NCBI RefSeq assembly: GCF_006345805.1
Contig: NW_021829473.1
Span: 1-5,995 of the forward strand
Direction of reading: 5' to 3'
DNA: 5,995 nucleotides
DNA from: Octopus sinensis
Lineage: Eukaryota
Shown: positions 1 through 5,995 of the stretch, piece after piece
How positions within the stretch are numbered: position 1 is the stretch's first letter
How the letters are laid out: the number at the start of each line of letters is the position of its first letter
The notes under the pieces: generated by a model
Seen by the model: the letters and a program-made list of their open reading frames with translations, nothing else
What the model was told of the DNA's origin: nothing
The model's database searches: none
Position numbers and translations under genes: made by a program

Positions 1-68
1 CTGCCTGGAACCGATCTCGGAATCTTGGGGTTAGTAGCCCGCGCTCTTAGCCACTACGCCGTATGCCC
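1..68 (-). mobile_element. tRNA-derived SINE head, running off the left edge of the window
   Basis: The reverse complement reads GGGCATACGGCGTAGTGGCTAAGAGCGCGGGCTACTAACCCCAAGATTCCGAGATCGGTTCCAGGCAG. It has an A-box-like CGGCGTAGTGG (61-51) and a degenerate B box GATCGGTTCC (16-7) at tRNA spacing. The B box is too degenerate for a functional tRNA gene. Confidence 0.7.
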
Positions 69-105
69 GTGTTAACAACAAACACGATGAGGACATAAAT
101 CCGTT

Positions 106-130
106 TAATGTAAATAATGTAAATAATGTA
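106..130 (+). repeat. Short tandem repeat (TAATGTAAA)x2.8, possibly a retroposon 3' tail
   Basis: TAATGTAAA TAATGTAAA TAATGTA is seen directly. The tail interpretation is inference. Confidence 0.6.
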
Positions 131-229
131 CTGATATAATTTCTTTGGAATAAAAAAGACAAGTCATATATACTTATAGACTTTAATTGCCATGCGGAGG
201 TGACCATCTGTTCGAAAATCAAGTATGTA

Positions 230-390
230 GGCGCAGGCGTGGGTGGATGGAATGTAGCTTGTTTCCTGACCACCTGTTTCCCGGTTCAAACTGCGTGGCA
301 CCTTGAGCAAGTGCTTTCTACTATAGCCTCGGGCCGACCAAAGCCTTGTGAATGGATTTGGTAGACGGAAACTGAAAGAAGCCCGTCGTA

Positions 391-424
<34 letters not shown>

Positions 425-646
425 AGCGTGTGTGTGTTTGTGTGTCTGTGTTGGTCCCCCTAGTATTGCTTGACAACCGATGCTAGTGTGTTTATGTCCC
501 CGTTACTTAGCGGTTCGGCAAAATAGACCGATAGAATAAGTACTGGGCTTACAAAAGAATAAGTCCCGGGGTCGAGTTGCTCGATTAAAGGCGGTGCTCC
601 AGCATGGCCGCAGTCAAATGACTGAAACAAGTAAAAGAGTAAAGAG
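230..646 (+). mobile_element. tRNA-derived, CORE-like SINE with internal microsatellite (family A, copy 1)
   Basis: Colinear with 5114-5605. It shows head GGCGCAGGCGTGG, CORE-like CCTTGAGCAAGTG (301-313), GAAGCCCGTCG, internal (TA)n/(GT)n (389-450), body GTCCCCGTTACTTAGCGGTTCGGCAAAA, and 3' end CCAGCATGGCCGCAGTCAAATGACTGAAACAAGTAAAAGAGTAAAGAG. Confidence 0.85.
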
Positions 647-780
647 TATACATACACACACACACATACACACGCACACACGCACACATATATATATGCA
701 TATATGTATGTACGTATGTATGTATGTATGTATGTATGTATGTATGTATGTATGTATGTGTGTATATATCTATGTGTGTG
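647..780. repeat. Compound microsatellite (CA)n-(TA)n-(TATG)n-(TG)n
   Basis: Seen directly. It explains the low-complexity ORFs 460..822 and 594..851. Confidence 0.95.
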
Positions 781-998
781 TGACTTTGTGTCTGTGCTTA
801 TCCCCACACCATCGCTCGACAATCGATGTTGGTGTGTTTATGTCCCCGTAACTTAGCAGTTCGACAAAAGAGAACGATAGAATAAGTACTAGGCTTATAA
901 AGAATAAATACTTGGGTCGATTTTTTTCAACTAAAGTCCTTTAAGGCGGTACTCCAGCATGGCCGTAGTCACGTGACTGAAACAAGTGAAACAAAATA
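775..998 (+). mobile_element. Headless 3' half of SINE family A (copy 2)
   Basis: Aligns to 440-646 and 5385-5600, including GTGTTTATGTCCCCGTAACTTAGC, GATAGAATAAGTACTAGGCTTA and CCAGCATGGCCGTAGTCACGTGACTGAAACAAGT. No tRNA head lies directly upstream. Confidence 0.85.
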
Positions 999-1088
999 AG
1001 GTGAATATTTATGAACAACGTTTTCGAAACTCGCAGTTCCTCTTCATTTATACCAGTAGTTATTGGTGTTTATTGTTATGTTAGTAAA

Positions 1089-1245
1089 TCTATTGTATAA
1101 AACCGTTCTGTCTTTCTGTCTGTGTGTCTTCTAGGATCTCGGGCGTCCTCCATCCGATTGCGCTCAAATTTGATATGTAGATCCCGACGGTATTAGGCGT
1201 GTATATAAATTCGATTCCAGGTGAGAATGCGATCGGTAAAGCCGT
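1089..1245 (+). mobile_element. Possible 5' end of a non-autonomous Helitron-like element
   Basis: A|TC start (A1088, TC 1089-1090), then TCTATTGTATAAAA, a CTGT-type microsatellite, and CCGATT...AAATTTG. This motif order resembles Lep1-type Helitron 5' ends. I found no canonical hairpin plus CTRR 3' end. Confidence 0.3.
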
Positions 1246-1363
1246 TTTTGTCCTGCTTTTCTTCCGTCAACCTGTACATAACTGCACCTTCCATTTTTTA
1301 TTGTTTTTGTACTGTTATTTCTTCTAAGTTCAAGAACCTCATAGAAGCACCCCCCTCTAGCCA

Positions 1364-1423
1364 TCGTTATTGTTGCTATATTTGTTATTGCGGTTGTTTT
1401 TGTAATTGTTTTTGTTTTTGTTT
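1364..1423. repeat. Degenerate (GTT)n/(AAC)n trinucleotide repeat
   Basis: The sequence ATCGTTATTGTTGCTATATTTGTTATTGCGGTTGTTTTTGTAATTGTTTTTGTTTTTGTT has clear period-3 structure. Confidence 0.75.
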
Positions 1424-2044
1424 AGCTTCAACTTACCTTTGACATACCTGTATGCTTCCACACGATCAAACTTTCGGTATCCCGTCCTTCATGCAACCGT
1501 GATGAAATGCAGGTTATTTCTAGCAACTTCATTGATCACATAGAGGCAGGTTTCTTTCCTGCCAAGCTTACTGTTTAAATCATGCTTATGTTTTCCCAGT
1601 CCACAGCCTTATCATTACTGGTACTTTAAACTCTTCGGTTGCATATTTGTGTGAATAAAATCGTTTTTCTTTGGAATAGAAAAAAAGTCTATCGTTATTT
1701 CTTCTTTTGCTTGTGTCTCAAATTTAGGTCAAAACAGTGTTTGAGACAGTCGGACAAGTCGTTTTCAGAAATTTTGGTTTAAATGTTTGACAACTCAGTA
1801 CCATCCATTGGACGGGGGCTGTTTTGCTCGTAAATGAATAAGCGACAATCTGTAGAGGTTAGGATTTTCACGCAAAGGAAAATACCGGCCAACATGAACT
1901 TTACCGCTACGATCTGTAAGCGGACAGTAAAAATATAGAAGACGTTCCTAAGGTTTGAGTTAAAGTTGTTGTTATCCAAATTTCGATGATGGAGCTTTGT
2001 TTCTTTGCTAGAAACGATCTCGCTCCTTCTCGAAAGAATACTAA

Positions 2045-2045
<1 letters not shown>

Positions 2046-2103
<58 letters not shown>

Positions 2104-2176
2104 ACATAGGCACATACACACACATACACGTACGCAAGCAAGTACATACATATACACATACACGCGTGTGTGTGTG
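2046..2176. repeat. Perfect (AC)28 followed by degenerate CA repeats and a short (GT)n
   Basis: Seen directly. The perfect tract spans 2046-2101. Confidence 0.95.
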
Positions 2177-2517
2177 AAGGCAGCTGGCTCACTGGTTAGA
2201 CAGTCGGGCTCACAATCATGAGGTAGTGAGTTCGATTCCCGGACCGGGCTGCGTGTTGTGTTCTTGAGCAAGACAACGCCGCTCCAGCTCACCCAGCTGT
2301 AGAAGTGAGTTGCAACGTCAATGGTGCCAAGCTGTATCGGCCCCTTTGCCATTCCCTTGGAGAACATCGGTGGTGTGGAAAGGGGAGGCAGTTGTGCATG
2401 GGCGACTGTTGGTCTTCCATAAACAACCTTGCTTGGACTTGTGCCTCAGAGGGAAACTTTCTAGGTGCAATCCCATGGTCATTCATGAGCGAAGAGGGTC
2501 TTTAACCTTTTTCCTTT
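2177..2517 (+). mobile_element. tRNA-derived CORE-like SINE (family B), apparently full length
   Basis: A box TGGCTCACTGG (2185-2195) and B box GTTCGATTCC (2230-2239). These are followed by TTCTTGAGCAAGACA...CCCAGCTGTAGAAGTGAG, resembling the CORE domain of MIR-type SINEs (CTTGGGCAAGTCACTT...CATCTGTAAAATGGG). It ends in a short repeat tail TTTAACCTTTTTCCTTT. Confidence 0.8.
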
Positions 2518-2526
2518 ATATATATA

Positions 2527-2552
2527 CACTTGCGTCGGAAATTAATTAGCAC
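2527..2552 (+). repeat. Tc1 left terminal inverted repeat
   Basis: CACTTGCGTCGGAAATTAATTAGCAC. The inner 15 bp are identical to the reverse complement of the right TIR. Confidence 0.9.
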
Positions 2553-2632
2553 TTCTCAAATTTCTACATTTTCTTACATTTTCTTAATTTAATTAACTTA
2601 TTATCAGAAACGAACTCGTTTTTAATCAAAAA

Positions 2633-2638
2633 TTTATT
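2633..2638 (-). terminator. Candidate polyadenylation signal of the transposase gene
   Basis: AATAAA on the minus strand about 50 nt after the reconstructed stop (2687-2689). The AT-rich context makes a chance match possible. Confidence 0.45.
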
Positions 2639-2686
2639 AAAACATATCCCAGCACACCACATAATGTTATTAATCGTGAAATTTAG

Positions 2687-3679
2687 TCAATATCTTGTTG
2701 CTCCCTTTGGCAGCAATGACAGCTGCTACGCGGGTCGGCATGCTGTCTATGAGTGCCTGCAGGTACTGTGCAGGATGGCCCTCCATGCAGCAAGAAGTGC
2801 CCCAAACAGCTCGTGTCGGTTCCTGTATTGCTGCACATTCAAATCCCTACCCAATCGACTCCAGAGGTTCTCAATAGGGTTCAGGTCAGGTGACTGGCCA
2901 GCCAGTCCATGACTGTCACCCCATGGTCCTTGAAGAAACCGGTTGTGAGCTTGGCTGTGTGGGAAGGCGCGTTGTCCTGCTGGAGCACGTACTCCTCGCC
3001 ACCAAAGAGGTATCCCGTACTATCTCAACGTACTTTGCTGCGTTTATGTTGCCTTCGACGGCATAGAGCCGCCCAACACCACTGTAGCTGAACGCCCTTC
3101 ACACCATCAGACCACCCCACCATGCTTTATGGTGGGAGCAATGCAGTCTTTGTTGAAGCGCTCACCCCTGCGGCGTCGCACATGGACAGGCTTGTCATTG
3201 ACGAGACTGAATCGCGACTCGTCAGTGAACATCACTGTCCGCCACTGCTGCACGGTCCATGTCTTGTGGGCACGGGCCCAGAGCAGCCGCCTCTTCCGGT
3301 TTTGGGTTGTAAGGAGCAGCTTACGGGCGGCCCTACAGGATTTTAGACCAGCTTCCAGTAATCTGGTCTTGACGGTGGTTGTAGACAACTGCTTCCCTGT
3401 CATCTTTTGCATCTCCTCCGCCAGTTGCCGGCTCGTTGCCCTTCGGTTGTACAGTGACTTTCAGATCAGCATCCAGTCCTCCCGCTGGGTCGTCAGCCTC
3501 TTCCATCCCCTACCCTTTTTGTCAGCTGCTGATCTGGTTTCCTCGTATTTCTTAAATAAGCACTGAATTGTGCGCCTGGCTACATCAAGTTTTCTGGCTA
3601 TTGCAGCCTCCGACAGCTTCCCACGCCACGAGAGAGCCTCGTACCGTCTCTCCAAGGTCATGCGAGGTCTTGGGCCCAT
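2687..3679 (-). pseudogene. Tc1-like DD34E transposase pseudogene
   Basis: Reconstruction: MGPRPRMTLERR...SEAAIARKLDVARRTIQ (HTH)...MLI*KSLYNRRATSRQLA...VMFTDESRF...KHGG/GLMV*RAFSYSGVG...QQDNAPSHTA...W/GQSPDLNPIENLW...IDSMPTRVAAVIAAK/GATRY*. Catalytic codons are D 3221-3223, D 2974-2976 and E 2870-2872, with 34 residues between the second D and E after repairing a 1-bp deletion. In-frame stops lie at 3461-3463 and 3099-3101. Frameshifts lie near 3115, 3010, 2901, 2773 and 2703. Confidence 0.95.
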
Positions 3680-3806
3680 CTAGGAATGAACGATAAAAAC
3701 CAGTTATTTTCATTAAAACTATTCCTTTGAATAATGTTATGCTATAACAAAACTGCTATGAGTTATTATTCATTAAACAAAAAAGAAAGAAAGCAGAATT
3801 TCTCAC
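3680..3806 (-). other. Candidate 127-bp 5'-UTR intron of the transposase gene
   Basis: Donor AAG|GTGAGA (GT at 3806-3805) and an AT-rich body. Acceptor TTTTTATCGTTCATTCCTAG|ATG, with the AG (3681-3680) immediately before the start codon. Confidence 0.6.
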
Positions 3807-3838
3807 CTTATTTGATGTATAACAGAAAGTTTTGTGAA

Positions 3839-3854
3839 CCGGAAGTGACGTCAC
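3839..3854. promoter_or_regulatory. Overlapping ETS-CRE motif CCGGAAGTGACGTCAC, candidate transposase promoter
   Basis: Exact ETS core CCGGAAGT overlapping the palindromic CRE GTGACGTCAC, about 30 nt upstream of the candidate splice donor. Confidence 0.55.
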
Positions 3855-4144
3855 CAAGCAGAGTGTAGGAGAATTTGTGAGGAAAAAAAAAATCTTGCAA
3901 ATACACAAATCAATTAACCTACGAGCTGTTCAAAACGTCTTACGCGATGAGAAAACTTAGTACGGTGTGATTTCGGTCCTTGCAAGGCGCTACCTATATC
4001 TATTAAACAAAGGAAGATTTGTCTGCATCTGCTGTTGCACTATGTCAACATCATAAGGCTGTAGACTCTCAAACCGCTCTGCAAACAAAGTTACGTCATC
4101 GTTCTGTGCAACAGTGAACTGCAACAAAGCAATAGTTCGAGATA

Positions 4145-4163
4145 TGGCCACTAGGTGACAGCA
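4145..4163 (+). promoter_or_regulatory. CTCF-like motif near the Tc1 right end
   Basis: TGGCCACTAGGTGACAGCA compared with the CTCF core CCACYAGRKGGCRS. There is one mismatch, at a well-conserved G. Confidence 0.3.
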
Positions 4164-4191
4164 AATACCGTGAGTGAAGAGCAAATCAAGG

Positions 4192-4217
4192 GTGCTAATT
4201 AATTTCTGACAGTAGTG
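4192..4217 (-). repeat. Tc1 right terminal inverted repeat
   Basis: The reverse complement is CACTACTGTCAGAAATTAATTAGCAC, with 4 mismatches to the left TIR. Confidence 0.9.
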
Positions 4218-4351
4218 TATATATATAATAGTATATATAGTATTATTATATATATTATAGAAGGATGTGTGTATAAAATAAATATTATATATATAAACAT
4301 ACATACATACATATATGCACATACATATATAGTATATTACACATGCATATA
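4218..4351. repeat. AT-rich degenerate (TA)n/(TACA)n low-complexity tract
   Basis: Seen directly, immediately outside the right TIR. Confidence 0.9.
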
Positions 4352-4496
4352 TGGTACAGGATGTCATAAAAGGTAAACACTTGAAATACGAAATACGAAA
4401 ACATGGAATACGAACTTTTTTGCGAAAAACAACTGAAAAAACAAATGGAAAACAAGACAAGTAACATGTAGAACGACCCTTCATCAGTTGTCGGCT

Positions 4497-4502
4497 TATA
4501 TA

Positions 4503-4545
<43 letters not shown>

Positions 4546-4644
4546 GTATGTATGTATGTATGTATGTATGTATGTATGTATGTATATATATTATATTATA
4601 TTATATTATATATATATATATAGCGAGAGAGAGAGAGAGAGAGA
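4497..4644. repeat. Compound microsatellite (TA)n-(TATG)n-(TA)n-(GA)n
   Basis: Seen directly. The (GA)n part spans 4625-4644. Confidence 0.95.
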
Positions 4645-4712
4645 AACAGACAGGAAGAAATACAGGTATATCATATATCATACAACAAAGATTCCTTGTT
4701 TATTAAAATTAC

Positions 4713-4802
4713 CTCAGCCTTTGAGAGATATTCCATAATTACCATTTTGCAATGAACCAGCTCCTTACGAGAAGAAGAGACAATCTCAAGCTCAAGAATT
4801 CC
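4713..4802 (-). CDS. Candidate internal coding exon (phase 0-0, 30 codons) of an unidentified host gene
   Basis: Pyrimidine tract TTTTCTTTTTCTC (4834-4822), then the first downstream AG (CTTTAG|G), a 90-bp body, and donor GAG|GTAATT. Only the phase-0 frame is open: GILELEIVSSSRKELVHCKMVIMEYLSKAE. The other two frames contain stops. I do not recognise the protein. Confidence 0.5.
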
Positions 4803-5005
4803 CTAAAGTTCATTTGTAATTGAGAAAAAGAAAACGCTTATTATCTAAAGATAAAAAGACAGCCTAAAGGACACTTGTTTCTGCCTCAGAATGGCCACAG
4901 CCATGTATGTGAATAACATAGACAAATACAGATATATCAAATACTACCTGGTGTTCATCCTGGTGTTTCATCCTGTATCATCTCAATATAACAAGAAATT
5001 TTATC

Positions 5006-5058
5006 GTGTCCCAGAATGGCTGCAGTCCAATGACTGAAGCAAGTACAATTAAAAAGAC
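5006..5058 (+). mobile_element. Short, diverged 3'-terminal fragment of SINE family A
   Basis: GTGTCCCAGAATGGCTGCAGTCCAATGACTGAAGCAAGTA matches GTGCTCCAGCATGGCCGCAGTCAAATGACTGAAACAAGTA of copy 1. Confidence 0.75.
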
Positions 5059-5063
5059 AAACA

Positions 5064-5110
5064 ATATATATTATAATATATATTATATATATATAATTAT
5101 ATTATATTAT
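5064..5110. repeat. AT-only low-complexity tract
   Basis: Seen directly. Confidence 0.9.
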
Positions 5111-5113
5111 AAA

Positions 5114-5280
5114 CAGGCGTGGGCTGTGTGATAAGAAACTTGATTCCCAAACACATGGTTCTGGGTTCAGTCCCACTGCGTGGACCCTTGAGCAAGTGTC
5201 TTCTAATATAGATCCGGGCCTACCAAAGCCTTGCGAGCAGATTTGATAGACGGGAACTGAATTAAGCCCGTCGTATATAC

Positions 5281-5332
<52 letters not shown>

Positions 5333-5605
5333 TGTGTGTGTGCGTGTGTGTGCGTGTACGTATGCATTTATGCGTATGTGCTTTTGTGTCTGTTTTTGTC
5401 CCCCACCATTGCTTGATAACCGAGGCTGGTGTGTTTACGTCCCCGTAACTTAGCGGTTCGGCAAAAAGAGAGCGAGAGAATAAGTATAGGCTTACATAGA
5501 ACAATTCTAGGGGTTTACTTTTTCGACTAAAAGAAACCCTCAAGCCGGTGCTCCAGCATGGCCGCAATCAAATGACTGAAACAAGTAAAAGAATGAAAAA
5601 AGAAT
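5114..5605 (+). mobile_element. SINE family A, near full length (copy 3), with internal (TA)/(GT)n microsatellite
   Basis: B-box-like GGTTCAGTCCC (5164-5174) and CORE-like CCTTGAGCAAGTGTCTT (5186-5202). An internal microsatellite spans about 5273-5385. Body and 3' end are colinear with copies 1 and 2. Confidence 0.85.
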
Positions 5606-5700
5606 AAATATATATATATAGTGTACATTTAAACACAATAGAAACAACCTTTAACAGGTAATTTTACACGCTAGAACAAGGAGTCAAAACGACCAAAACC

Positions 5701-5716
5701 ACACACACACATAATA

Positions 5717-5760
<44 letters not shown>
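5701..5760. repeat. (AC)n-(TA)n microsatellite
   Basis: Seen directly. Confidence 0.95.
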
Positions 5761-5762
<2 letters not shown>

Positions 5763-5995
5763 ATGGTGGCTGCCCCATCGTTATCGAGTATGGGAATTGC
5801 ACGAAGCTTCATCAATTTTGTTTTATCGTGCAATGCCTGTGCAAGAAGATTTTTTATTAAAGTGAGGAAAGACTGTGCACTGAGTCAATCCCACTCACTA
5901 AGCAACAGCAGCCATAATCCGAAAAGAAGAACAAGTCAACATCATCGGTAACCACTGAGCCGCAGGTTTTATGTTGGAGTTATCCCAGTTACCTG

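Follow-up and report, generated by a model that had tools for sequence, protein, structure and literature searches.

An Inactivated Octopus Tc1/mariner Element with Family-Wide Gene-Trap Geometry and a Probably Fortuitous Open Frame Upstream

Introduction

Fusions between host genes and transposases arise by alternative splicing (Cosby et al., bioRxiv 10.1101/2020.05.07.082677), and splice acceptors situated just before a transposase open reading frame (ORF) are the documented means by which new transcription factors of vertebrates have captured DNA-binding domains. Does a 5,995-nucleotide stretch of the Octopus sinensis genome (assembly GCF_006345805.1, contig NW_021829473.1, positions 1 to 5,995; hereafter, the window) hold such a fusion in a cephalopod? 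The original prediction, drawn from the letters of the window, held that a minus-strand host exon at 4713–4802 is spliced in frame to the start of a Tc1 transposase about 1 kb downstream, yielding either a protein that gains the 72 residues covering the first helix-turn-helix (HTH) domain of the transposase or a trap that truncates host transcripts. In what follows, coordinates are those of the window, (−) denotes the minus strand, and a slash within a motif marks an exon–intron or element boundary.

Our answer has two parts. The window contains an old Tc1/mariner copy, now inactivated, from a multicopy octopus family, and it is to this family as a whole that the gene-trap geometry belongs. 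For the upstream "host exon", the likeliest account is an open frame that arose by chance. We hold this combined reading to be probable, and below we lay out the element, the splice-like sites of its family, the gene models that use them, the decay of this copy, and the evidence on the upstream frame.

Identity and Boundaries of the Element

With the exception of the exon, every feature of the original prediction falls inside a single Tc1/mariner (DD34E) element of 1,691 bp at 2527–4217(−), which is complete in length but inactivated and is delimited by its terminal inverted repeats (TIRs), alignments of its copies and Pfam matches. These transposon features go far beyond what chance would produce. 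Homology among copies ends at TA/CACTAC... on one side and at ...AGTG/TA on the other, which places the TA target-site duplication at 4218–4219 (upstream side) and 2525–2526 (its partner). The TIRs are 26 nt each, the 5' one (CACTACTGTCAGAAATTAATTAGCAC) at 4192–4217(−) and the 3' one at 2527–2552(−). Both were recovered by the inverted-repeat search and by copy alignment, the corresponding pair (I1) being 89% complementary across 37 nt with the flanking TA repeats included.

The N-terminal 190 residues of the transposase match the Pfam family PF01498 (HTH_Tnp_Tc3_2; E = 1.2e-16, 61 bits against a cut-off of 31.5), while the first HTH shows only weaker, sub-threshold matches to HTH_23. The C-terminal pieces, concatenated over the frame changes with an X at each break, match PF13358 (DDE_3; E = 9.6e-14). 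The spacing in DNAPSH...NPIE, counted by eye on the three-frame translations, gives 34 residues from the second D to the E, as in DD34E transposases. The 5' leader of the element spans 538 nt and is unusually long for Tc1-like transposons.

The nearest proteins are seven predictions from Octopus vulgaris at 86–93% identity, mostly named "Tcb1 transposase". An exact-sequence look-up of the 72-residue ORF and of ten other ORFs of the window returned no identical record. At the DNA level, seven genomic copies (L001–L007) in the O. vulgaris assembly GCA_951406725.2 are about 94–96% identical to the element; L001 and L003–L007 align across all or most of the 1.7 kb, and L002 comprises only the 5' ~1,000 bp. 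Two of the transposon-derived O. vulgaris models, P0005 and P0002, bear misleading names ("N-acetyltransferase 6" and "box and transposase domain containing").

Splice-Like Sites Shared by the Family

The sequence features on which the original prediction was built are present as described. An AG at 3681–3680(−) directly precedes the ATG at 3679–3677; the ORF at 3679–3461(−) runs for 72 codons to a TGA at 3463–3461; an AATAAA stands on the minus strand at 2638–2633 (TTTATT at 2633–2638 of the plus strand); and the frame at 4802–4713(−) ends in GAG/GT. The gene-trap geometry also stands, in that the acceptor adjoins the ATG, belongs to the family consensus and is used by two gene models (P0004 and P0005) at other copies. 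What does not stand is its ascription to this locus: it is a property of the family and an instance of a known principle.

We compared the 5' region across five copies and the full length across four (the window, L001, L003 and L004). The five-copy consensus reads ...CATCAAATAAG/GTGAGAAATT...(127 nt)...TTTTTATCGTTCATTCCTAG/ATGGGCCC, that is, a donor and an acceptor both lying within the element. The donor, AAG/GTGAGA at 3805–3810(−) (last exon base 3807, GT at 3806–3805), scores 10.6 on a crude splice matrix, the second best of 363 minus-strand GTs. The acceptor AG at 3680–3681(−), in the context CCTAG/ATG, is invariant in the five copies and forms the exon-2 boundary of both P0004 and P0005; its score on the corresponding crude matrix is 5.6, the sixth best of 314 minus-strand AGs. 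Between them lies a 127-nt segment (3680–3806(−)) that is AT-rich, with branch-like motifs (TTTAAT/TAACT, here two alternatives) and the pyrimidine tract tttttatcgttcattcctag. The presence of this consensus donor–acceptor pair in all aligned copies suggests that the segment is a probable 5'-untranslated region (UTR) intron native to the element. We also considered an upstream coding exon inside the element and rejected it: the frame that leads up to the 3807 donor stays open over 29 codons but has no ATG, and the N-terminus of the family's proteins (see below) speaks against such an exon.

Further signals of a transcription unit accompany this pair. About 35 nt upstream of the element's donor, at 3839–3853(−), a palindrome resembling the cAMP response element (CRE) stands beside an ETS-like core (TGACGTCACTTCCGG), identical in the five aligned copies; from its motif resemblance it may be a candidate internal promoter element. 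At the other end, the AATAAA at 2633–2638(−) is the element's own polyadenylation signal, conserved in the four aligned full-length copies and placed about 50 nt beyond the native stop (2689–2687). It has the same orientation as the acceptor at 3681–3680, and both are part of the family consensus. Finally, an internal cryptic donor, CGCAGGG/GTGAGC at 3160–3172(−) with 3166 as its last exon base, is homologous to the exon ends of the gene models P0006 and P0007 and is intact in the window (score 7.6 on the crude matrix).

Gene Models Spliced at Other Copies

Seven O. vulgaris gene models match the family, and four of these are spliced to flanking exons at the acceptor or at the internal donor. 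In two of them, upstream exons are joined in phase 0 onto the CCTAG/ATG acceptor through canonical GT/AG junctions. P0004 (at L002) has a first exon at 6001–6186 that ends in GCTGAG/gtacaa and is joined over 24 kb to the transposase ATG at 30493, which is preceded by ttcattcctag; the model then leaves the element at a donor in the truncated end of the L002 copy. P0005 (at L003) has a two-codon exon, ATGAAG/gtaatg, joined over 6.4 kb to the transposase ATG at 12444. In the other two, P0006 (at L005) and P0007 (at L006), the model exits the element at the internal donor CGCAGGG/gtgagc (L005:3285–3325 and L006:3261–3300) and continues at canonical acceptors in exons outside it.

The first "coding" exon of P0004 is a translated 24-nt minisatellite, (KDYAEVQV)n, in the region L002:5950–6280. 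Because each unit of this minisatellite bears a GAG/GTACAA donor-like site, P0004 is doubtful as a protein.

The annotation of O. vulgaris applied ab initio predictors to the genome after repeat masking and derived PASA/TransDecoder models from Iso-Seq and RNA-seq data (PMC10700109). Because the ab initio prediction used the masked genome, models inside repeats are plausibly transcript-derived, and those at the other copies of this family plausibly reflect real transcripts.

One could instead hold that the AG before the ATG and the GTGAGA upstream are fortuitous, that the element is intronless, and that annotation artefacts on repeats account for the fusion models of O. vulgaris. Most classical Tc1 elements lack introns, the conservation seen among young copies carries no information, and two of the models look weak, the first exon of P0004 being a translated minisatellite and that of P0005 just two codons. 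Against this, the same acceptor is used at two independent loci and the same internal donor at two more, each with canonical partner sites, and the donor and acceptor are among the best-scoring on their strand and lie 127 nt apart. Moreover, ab initio prediction ran on masked sequence (PMC10700109), and it is a documented regularity that transposons bring an acceptor just upstream of their ORF (bioRxiv 10.1101/2020.05.07.082677). On balance, we regard coincidence and artefact as an unlikely account of these sites.

Decay of the Transposase Gene

The ATG at 3679 is the native start of the family, the other copies beginning with MGPRPRMTLERR; judging by family proteins and more distant relatives, the complete N-terminus of the transposase is MGPRPRM. 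As seen by ORF translation and alignment, the first 72 codons (3461–3679(−)) carry the first HTH and a GRGRKR-like motif and end at a TGA (3463–3461) found in this copy alone. Since the other copies read CGA at this position (Arg, in "MLIRKSL"), the stop represents a CpG-to-TpG change, and two neighbouring Arg-to-Trp changes (CGG>TGG) in this copy are likewise CpG-derived. The original prediction had overlooked that the stop is a copy-specific CpG mutation in a pseudogene, and that the acceptor has a partner donor inside the element.

The remainder of the transposase (2687–3460(−); three-frame translation, alignment, Pfam) comprises the second HTH and the DDE_3 core. Its reading frame is broken: in addition to the TGA at 3463–3461 there are stops at 3109–3107/3101–3099 and elsewhere, and at least three frame changes. 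This state of the ORF bears on the activity of the element, not on its membership of the family. A TGG>TGA change ("MV-stop-GAF") at 3101–3099 is common to all four aligned full-length copies (the window, L001, L003 and L004), as is a frame break or short deletion before EEYVLQQDNAPSH (~2990–3030). The master from which the sampled family spread was therefore defective already, and presumably was mobilised in trans.

Several copies retain an open N-terminal ORF of 179–193 residues that encodes the DNA-binding part only. Selection on such a shared 190-residue, DNA-binding-only product was considered and rejected, the substitutions in the eight copies being about as non-synonymous as random ones. 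Relative to the family consensus, the first 190 codons of this copy have acquired no synonymous change, eight non-synonymous changes and one stop; pooling the eight copies gives 13 synonymous and 54 non-synonymous changes and one stop, a synonymous share of 19% compared with the 24% expected from random substitution. The pattern is one of neutral decay, and nothing in it points to maintenance of the HTH part.

This copy is also without about 15 nt of the 5' leader (...CAGTGCAACAACAACTTGGAGTGC..., at ~4036–4042(−)) that are present in the other four copies (columns 212–233 of alignment A1).

The Candidate Host Exon

The candidate exon at 4713–4802(−) translates to GILELEIVSSSRKELVHCKMVIMEYLSKAE, followed by GTAATT, and its frame amounts to 43 codons between a TAG (4805–4803) and a TGA. 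This 43-codon, stop-to-stop frame yielded no candidate among 5.8 billion proteins, none of which shared three 5-residue words with it, and no Pfam match. Had the frame been an annotated octopus exon, the protein search would have hit it. No fusion protein containing the exon was present in the protein collection searched. The 46 other open frames of at least 28 residues in the non-repeat parts of the window, taken from both strands and searched as one concatenated query, returned nothing at E ≤ 10. Together, these searches show a window apparently free of coding exons of any annotated gene on either strand.

The splice scores add to this picture. The acceptor of the candidate exon scores −2.5 on the crude matrix, and 88 of the 314 minus-strand AGs do equally well or better, which is chance level. 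A better acceptor (4763) and another donor (4743) fall within the "exon" itself. The best acceptor-like site of the whole minus strand (tgttttccatttgttttttcag/TTG at 4433–4454(−), first exon base 4432, score 7.5) sits between the candidate exon and the element, within a repeat that also occurs in L002, and further candidates follow at 4078 and 3999 before the proposed target is reached. Splicing to 4432, 4078 or 3999 would place a stop-rich leader before the ATG.

That 4713–4802(−) is nevertheless a real host exon, spliced to the transposon's acceptor so as to give a 72-residue host–HTH fusion or a trap ending at the AATAAA at 2638–2633, deserves weighing on its merits. The geometry is exact, with phase 0 meeting phase 0 in an open frame, and the acceptor is the one employed in the models at two other copies; the donor is decent, and the nominal chance of finding such an exon is just 3–5%. 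However, no protein among the billions searched contains the exon, its frame extends over only 43 codons between two stops, and its own acceptor does not rise above chance, while stronger acceptor-like competition (4432, with 4078 and 3999) stands between its donor and the target. In addition, the HTH region that would be captured has undergone only non-synonymous and nonsense changes, three of them attributable to CpG decay, and the search of open frames in the non-repeat parts of the window gave no evidence of a gene on the minus strand. The claims of a host exon and of a fusion or trap built on it consequently have no support, and the unmatched exon, the intervening 4432 acceptor and the HTH changes tell against them; we consider it highly improbable that the exon is real and contributes to either outcome, and as improbable that 4713 is truly joined to 3679 at this locus.

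The reading of a chance frame upstream of a decayed family member has points weighing against it too. The donor of the candidate exon is fairly good (score 8.2, the fourth best of 363 minus-strand GTs), and an equivalent phase-0 exon arose in only 2.8% (≥90 nt) to 5.1% (≥60 nt) of simulated upstream regions (first-order Markov, 1,778 nt), although the thresholds, fixed post hoc to equal what was observed, flatter the observation. The segment around the frame, 4497–5073, has no repeat match in 114 kb of sampled octopus DNA; it is thus low-copy and could be unique functional sequence. The locus may also hold a host gene on the minus strand, an exon that is non-coding or a micro-exon that has escaped annotation. 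The splice matrices reproduce general metazoan consensus values and are not octopus-trained, the notion of a native intron has consensus motifs as its sole basis, and conservation among the copies is no evidence of function because the copies evolve neutrally.

A further possibility dispenses with 4713–4802 altogether: the element might lie in sense orientation within an intron of a minus-strand host gene or long non-coding RNA whose exons are beyond the window, so that its acceptor and polyadenylation signal, or its internal donor at 3166, would occasionally trap or exonize the transcripts of that gene. This would follow the pattern of P0004 and P0005, with their 24-kb and 6.4-kb introns onto the acceptor, and likewise that of P0006 and P0007, and the acceptor, the 3166 donor and the AATAAA are all intact in the window. 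On the other hand, no coding exon was found in the window on either strand, a random insertion would be antisense in about half of all cases and intergenic in many. Such a setting for this particular copy seems to us quite unlikely.

A Proposed Explanation

We therefore return to an inactivated family member with a fortuitous frame upstream. The element sits at a TA within repeat- and microsatellite-rich non-coding DNA. Its family, as we envisage it, would constitute a full transcription unit: a candidate promoter motif inside the element, then a first exon that is short and non-coding, the 127-nt intron in the 5' UTR, the ORF and an AATAAA. With the acceptor positioned at the start codon, any sense copy downstream of a host donor could therefore be spliced onto, and a host donor in phase 0 would produce an in-frame N-terminal extension. 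At this locus, the 72-residue product would be what is left of a neutrally decaying pseudogene ahead of its CpG-derived nonsense mutation, and an in-frame host fusion would not be expected. The practical value of the locus is accordingly negative, since the right course is to mask it as a decayed transposon and not to report it as a fusion candidate.

More tentatively, we suggest that the octopus Tc1 family is a promoter/intron/ORF/polyadenylation unit that is recurrently spliced to flanking Octopus exons at the acceptor and the internal donor, a generalization that we advance as a possibility and with some doubt. If it were true, the family would actively give rise to chimeric transcripts that contain the HTH and would supply raw material for host–transposase fusion genes in a cephalopod. 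The rule that transposons carry their own capture sites, so far shown in tetrapods, would then extend to molluscs, with the present locus as one silent, decayed member.

Surrounding DNA

Outside 4497–5073, about 64% of the window is interspersed repeat. Repeats resembling short interspersed nuclear elements (SINEs) occupy 1–135, 224–1012, 2163–2526 and 5074–5625; several end in ...GGTGCTCCAGCATGGCCGCAGTCAAATGACTGAAACAAGTAAAAG followed by microsatellites, and they recur up to 16 times in the 114 kb of sampled O. vulgaris DNA. Scans of the window for tRNAs (ARAGORN) and against Rfam found nothing, the SINE-like repeats being too diverged or insufficiently tRNA-like. Directly upstream of the element, 4218–4496 is another repeat, 72% identical to L002:3781–4050, and contains the acceptor-like site at 4432.

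In non-repeat DNA downstream of the element, the minus strand has the strongest donor-like site of the window (AAG/GTAAGT, score 12.5; donor-like positions 1437 and 1448) and a good acceptor-like site at 1913(−) (ccgcttacag/A, score 6.4). The 1437/1448 donors and the 1913 acceptor are linked by no open frame and no protein match; they could belong to a non-coding exon or be due to chance.

Comparison with Known Systems

As a transposon, the element resembles other Tc1-like DD34E transposons in its TA duplication, short TIRs, bipartite HTH, DDE_3 core, length of ~1.7 kb and multicopy nature. The octopus family differs from them in its long leader, which holds both a consensus donor/acceptor pair and the CRE/ETS-like motif, and in the nonsense and frame-breaking lesions common to all the full-length copies examined.

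The putative intron has counterparts in Tc3 of C. elegans and Minos of Drosophila hydei, which are Tc1-like transposons with a spliceosomal intron. In both of these, the intron interrupts the coding sequence, whereas that of the octopus element would lie wholly in the 5' UTR and end at the ATG. In their order between inverted repeats, the acceptor, start codon, ORF and AATAAA recall gene-trap cassettes of the Sleeping Beauty/Tol2 type. Unlike these engineered cassettes, the octopus element is natural and decayed, its own upstream donor and promoter-like motif would compete, and its trapping is putative.

With respect to host–transposase fusion genes such as SETMAR, KRABINER and PGBD3-CSB, the present locus departs from the type in several ways. 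Neither protein and Pfam searches nor splice scores identified a genuine upstream host coding exon, or any demonstrable host gene, at this locus. The transposase part is free of selective constraint (19% synonymous changes where random substitution gives 24%), so that purifying selection on a captured domain is not seen, and its ORF is cut at codon 73. At the other octopus copies, the upstream exons of the models are tiny or repeat-derived, in contrast to the functional host domains of the SETMAR/KRABINER type. The likeness lies in the acceptor just upstream of the transposase's ORF and in the upstream exons joined to it at those other copies. In eight of nine host–transposase fusions, splicing is reported to use an acceptor that derives from the transposon and adjoins the ORF on its upstream side (bioRxiv 10.1101/2020.05.07.082677), and the octopus geometry, with its acceptor at the ATG, is an instance of this known principle of Cosby et al. 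(bioRxiv 10.1101/2020.05.07.082677). What is somewhat new is its occurrence in a cephalopod family, in which the acceptor apparently closes a 5'-UTR intron native to the element at its 3' end and several octopus gene models use the sites of the element. With a layout like that of the vertebrate fusions, and with gene models that already draw on its sites, the octopus Tc1 family offers a concrete, testable case in which to ask whether cephalopods follow this route to fusion genes too.

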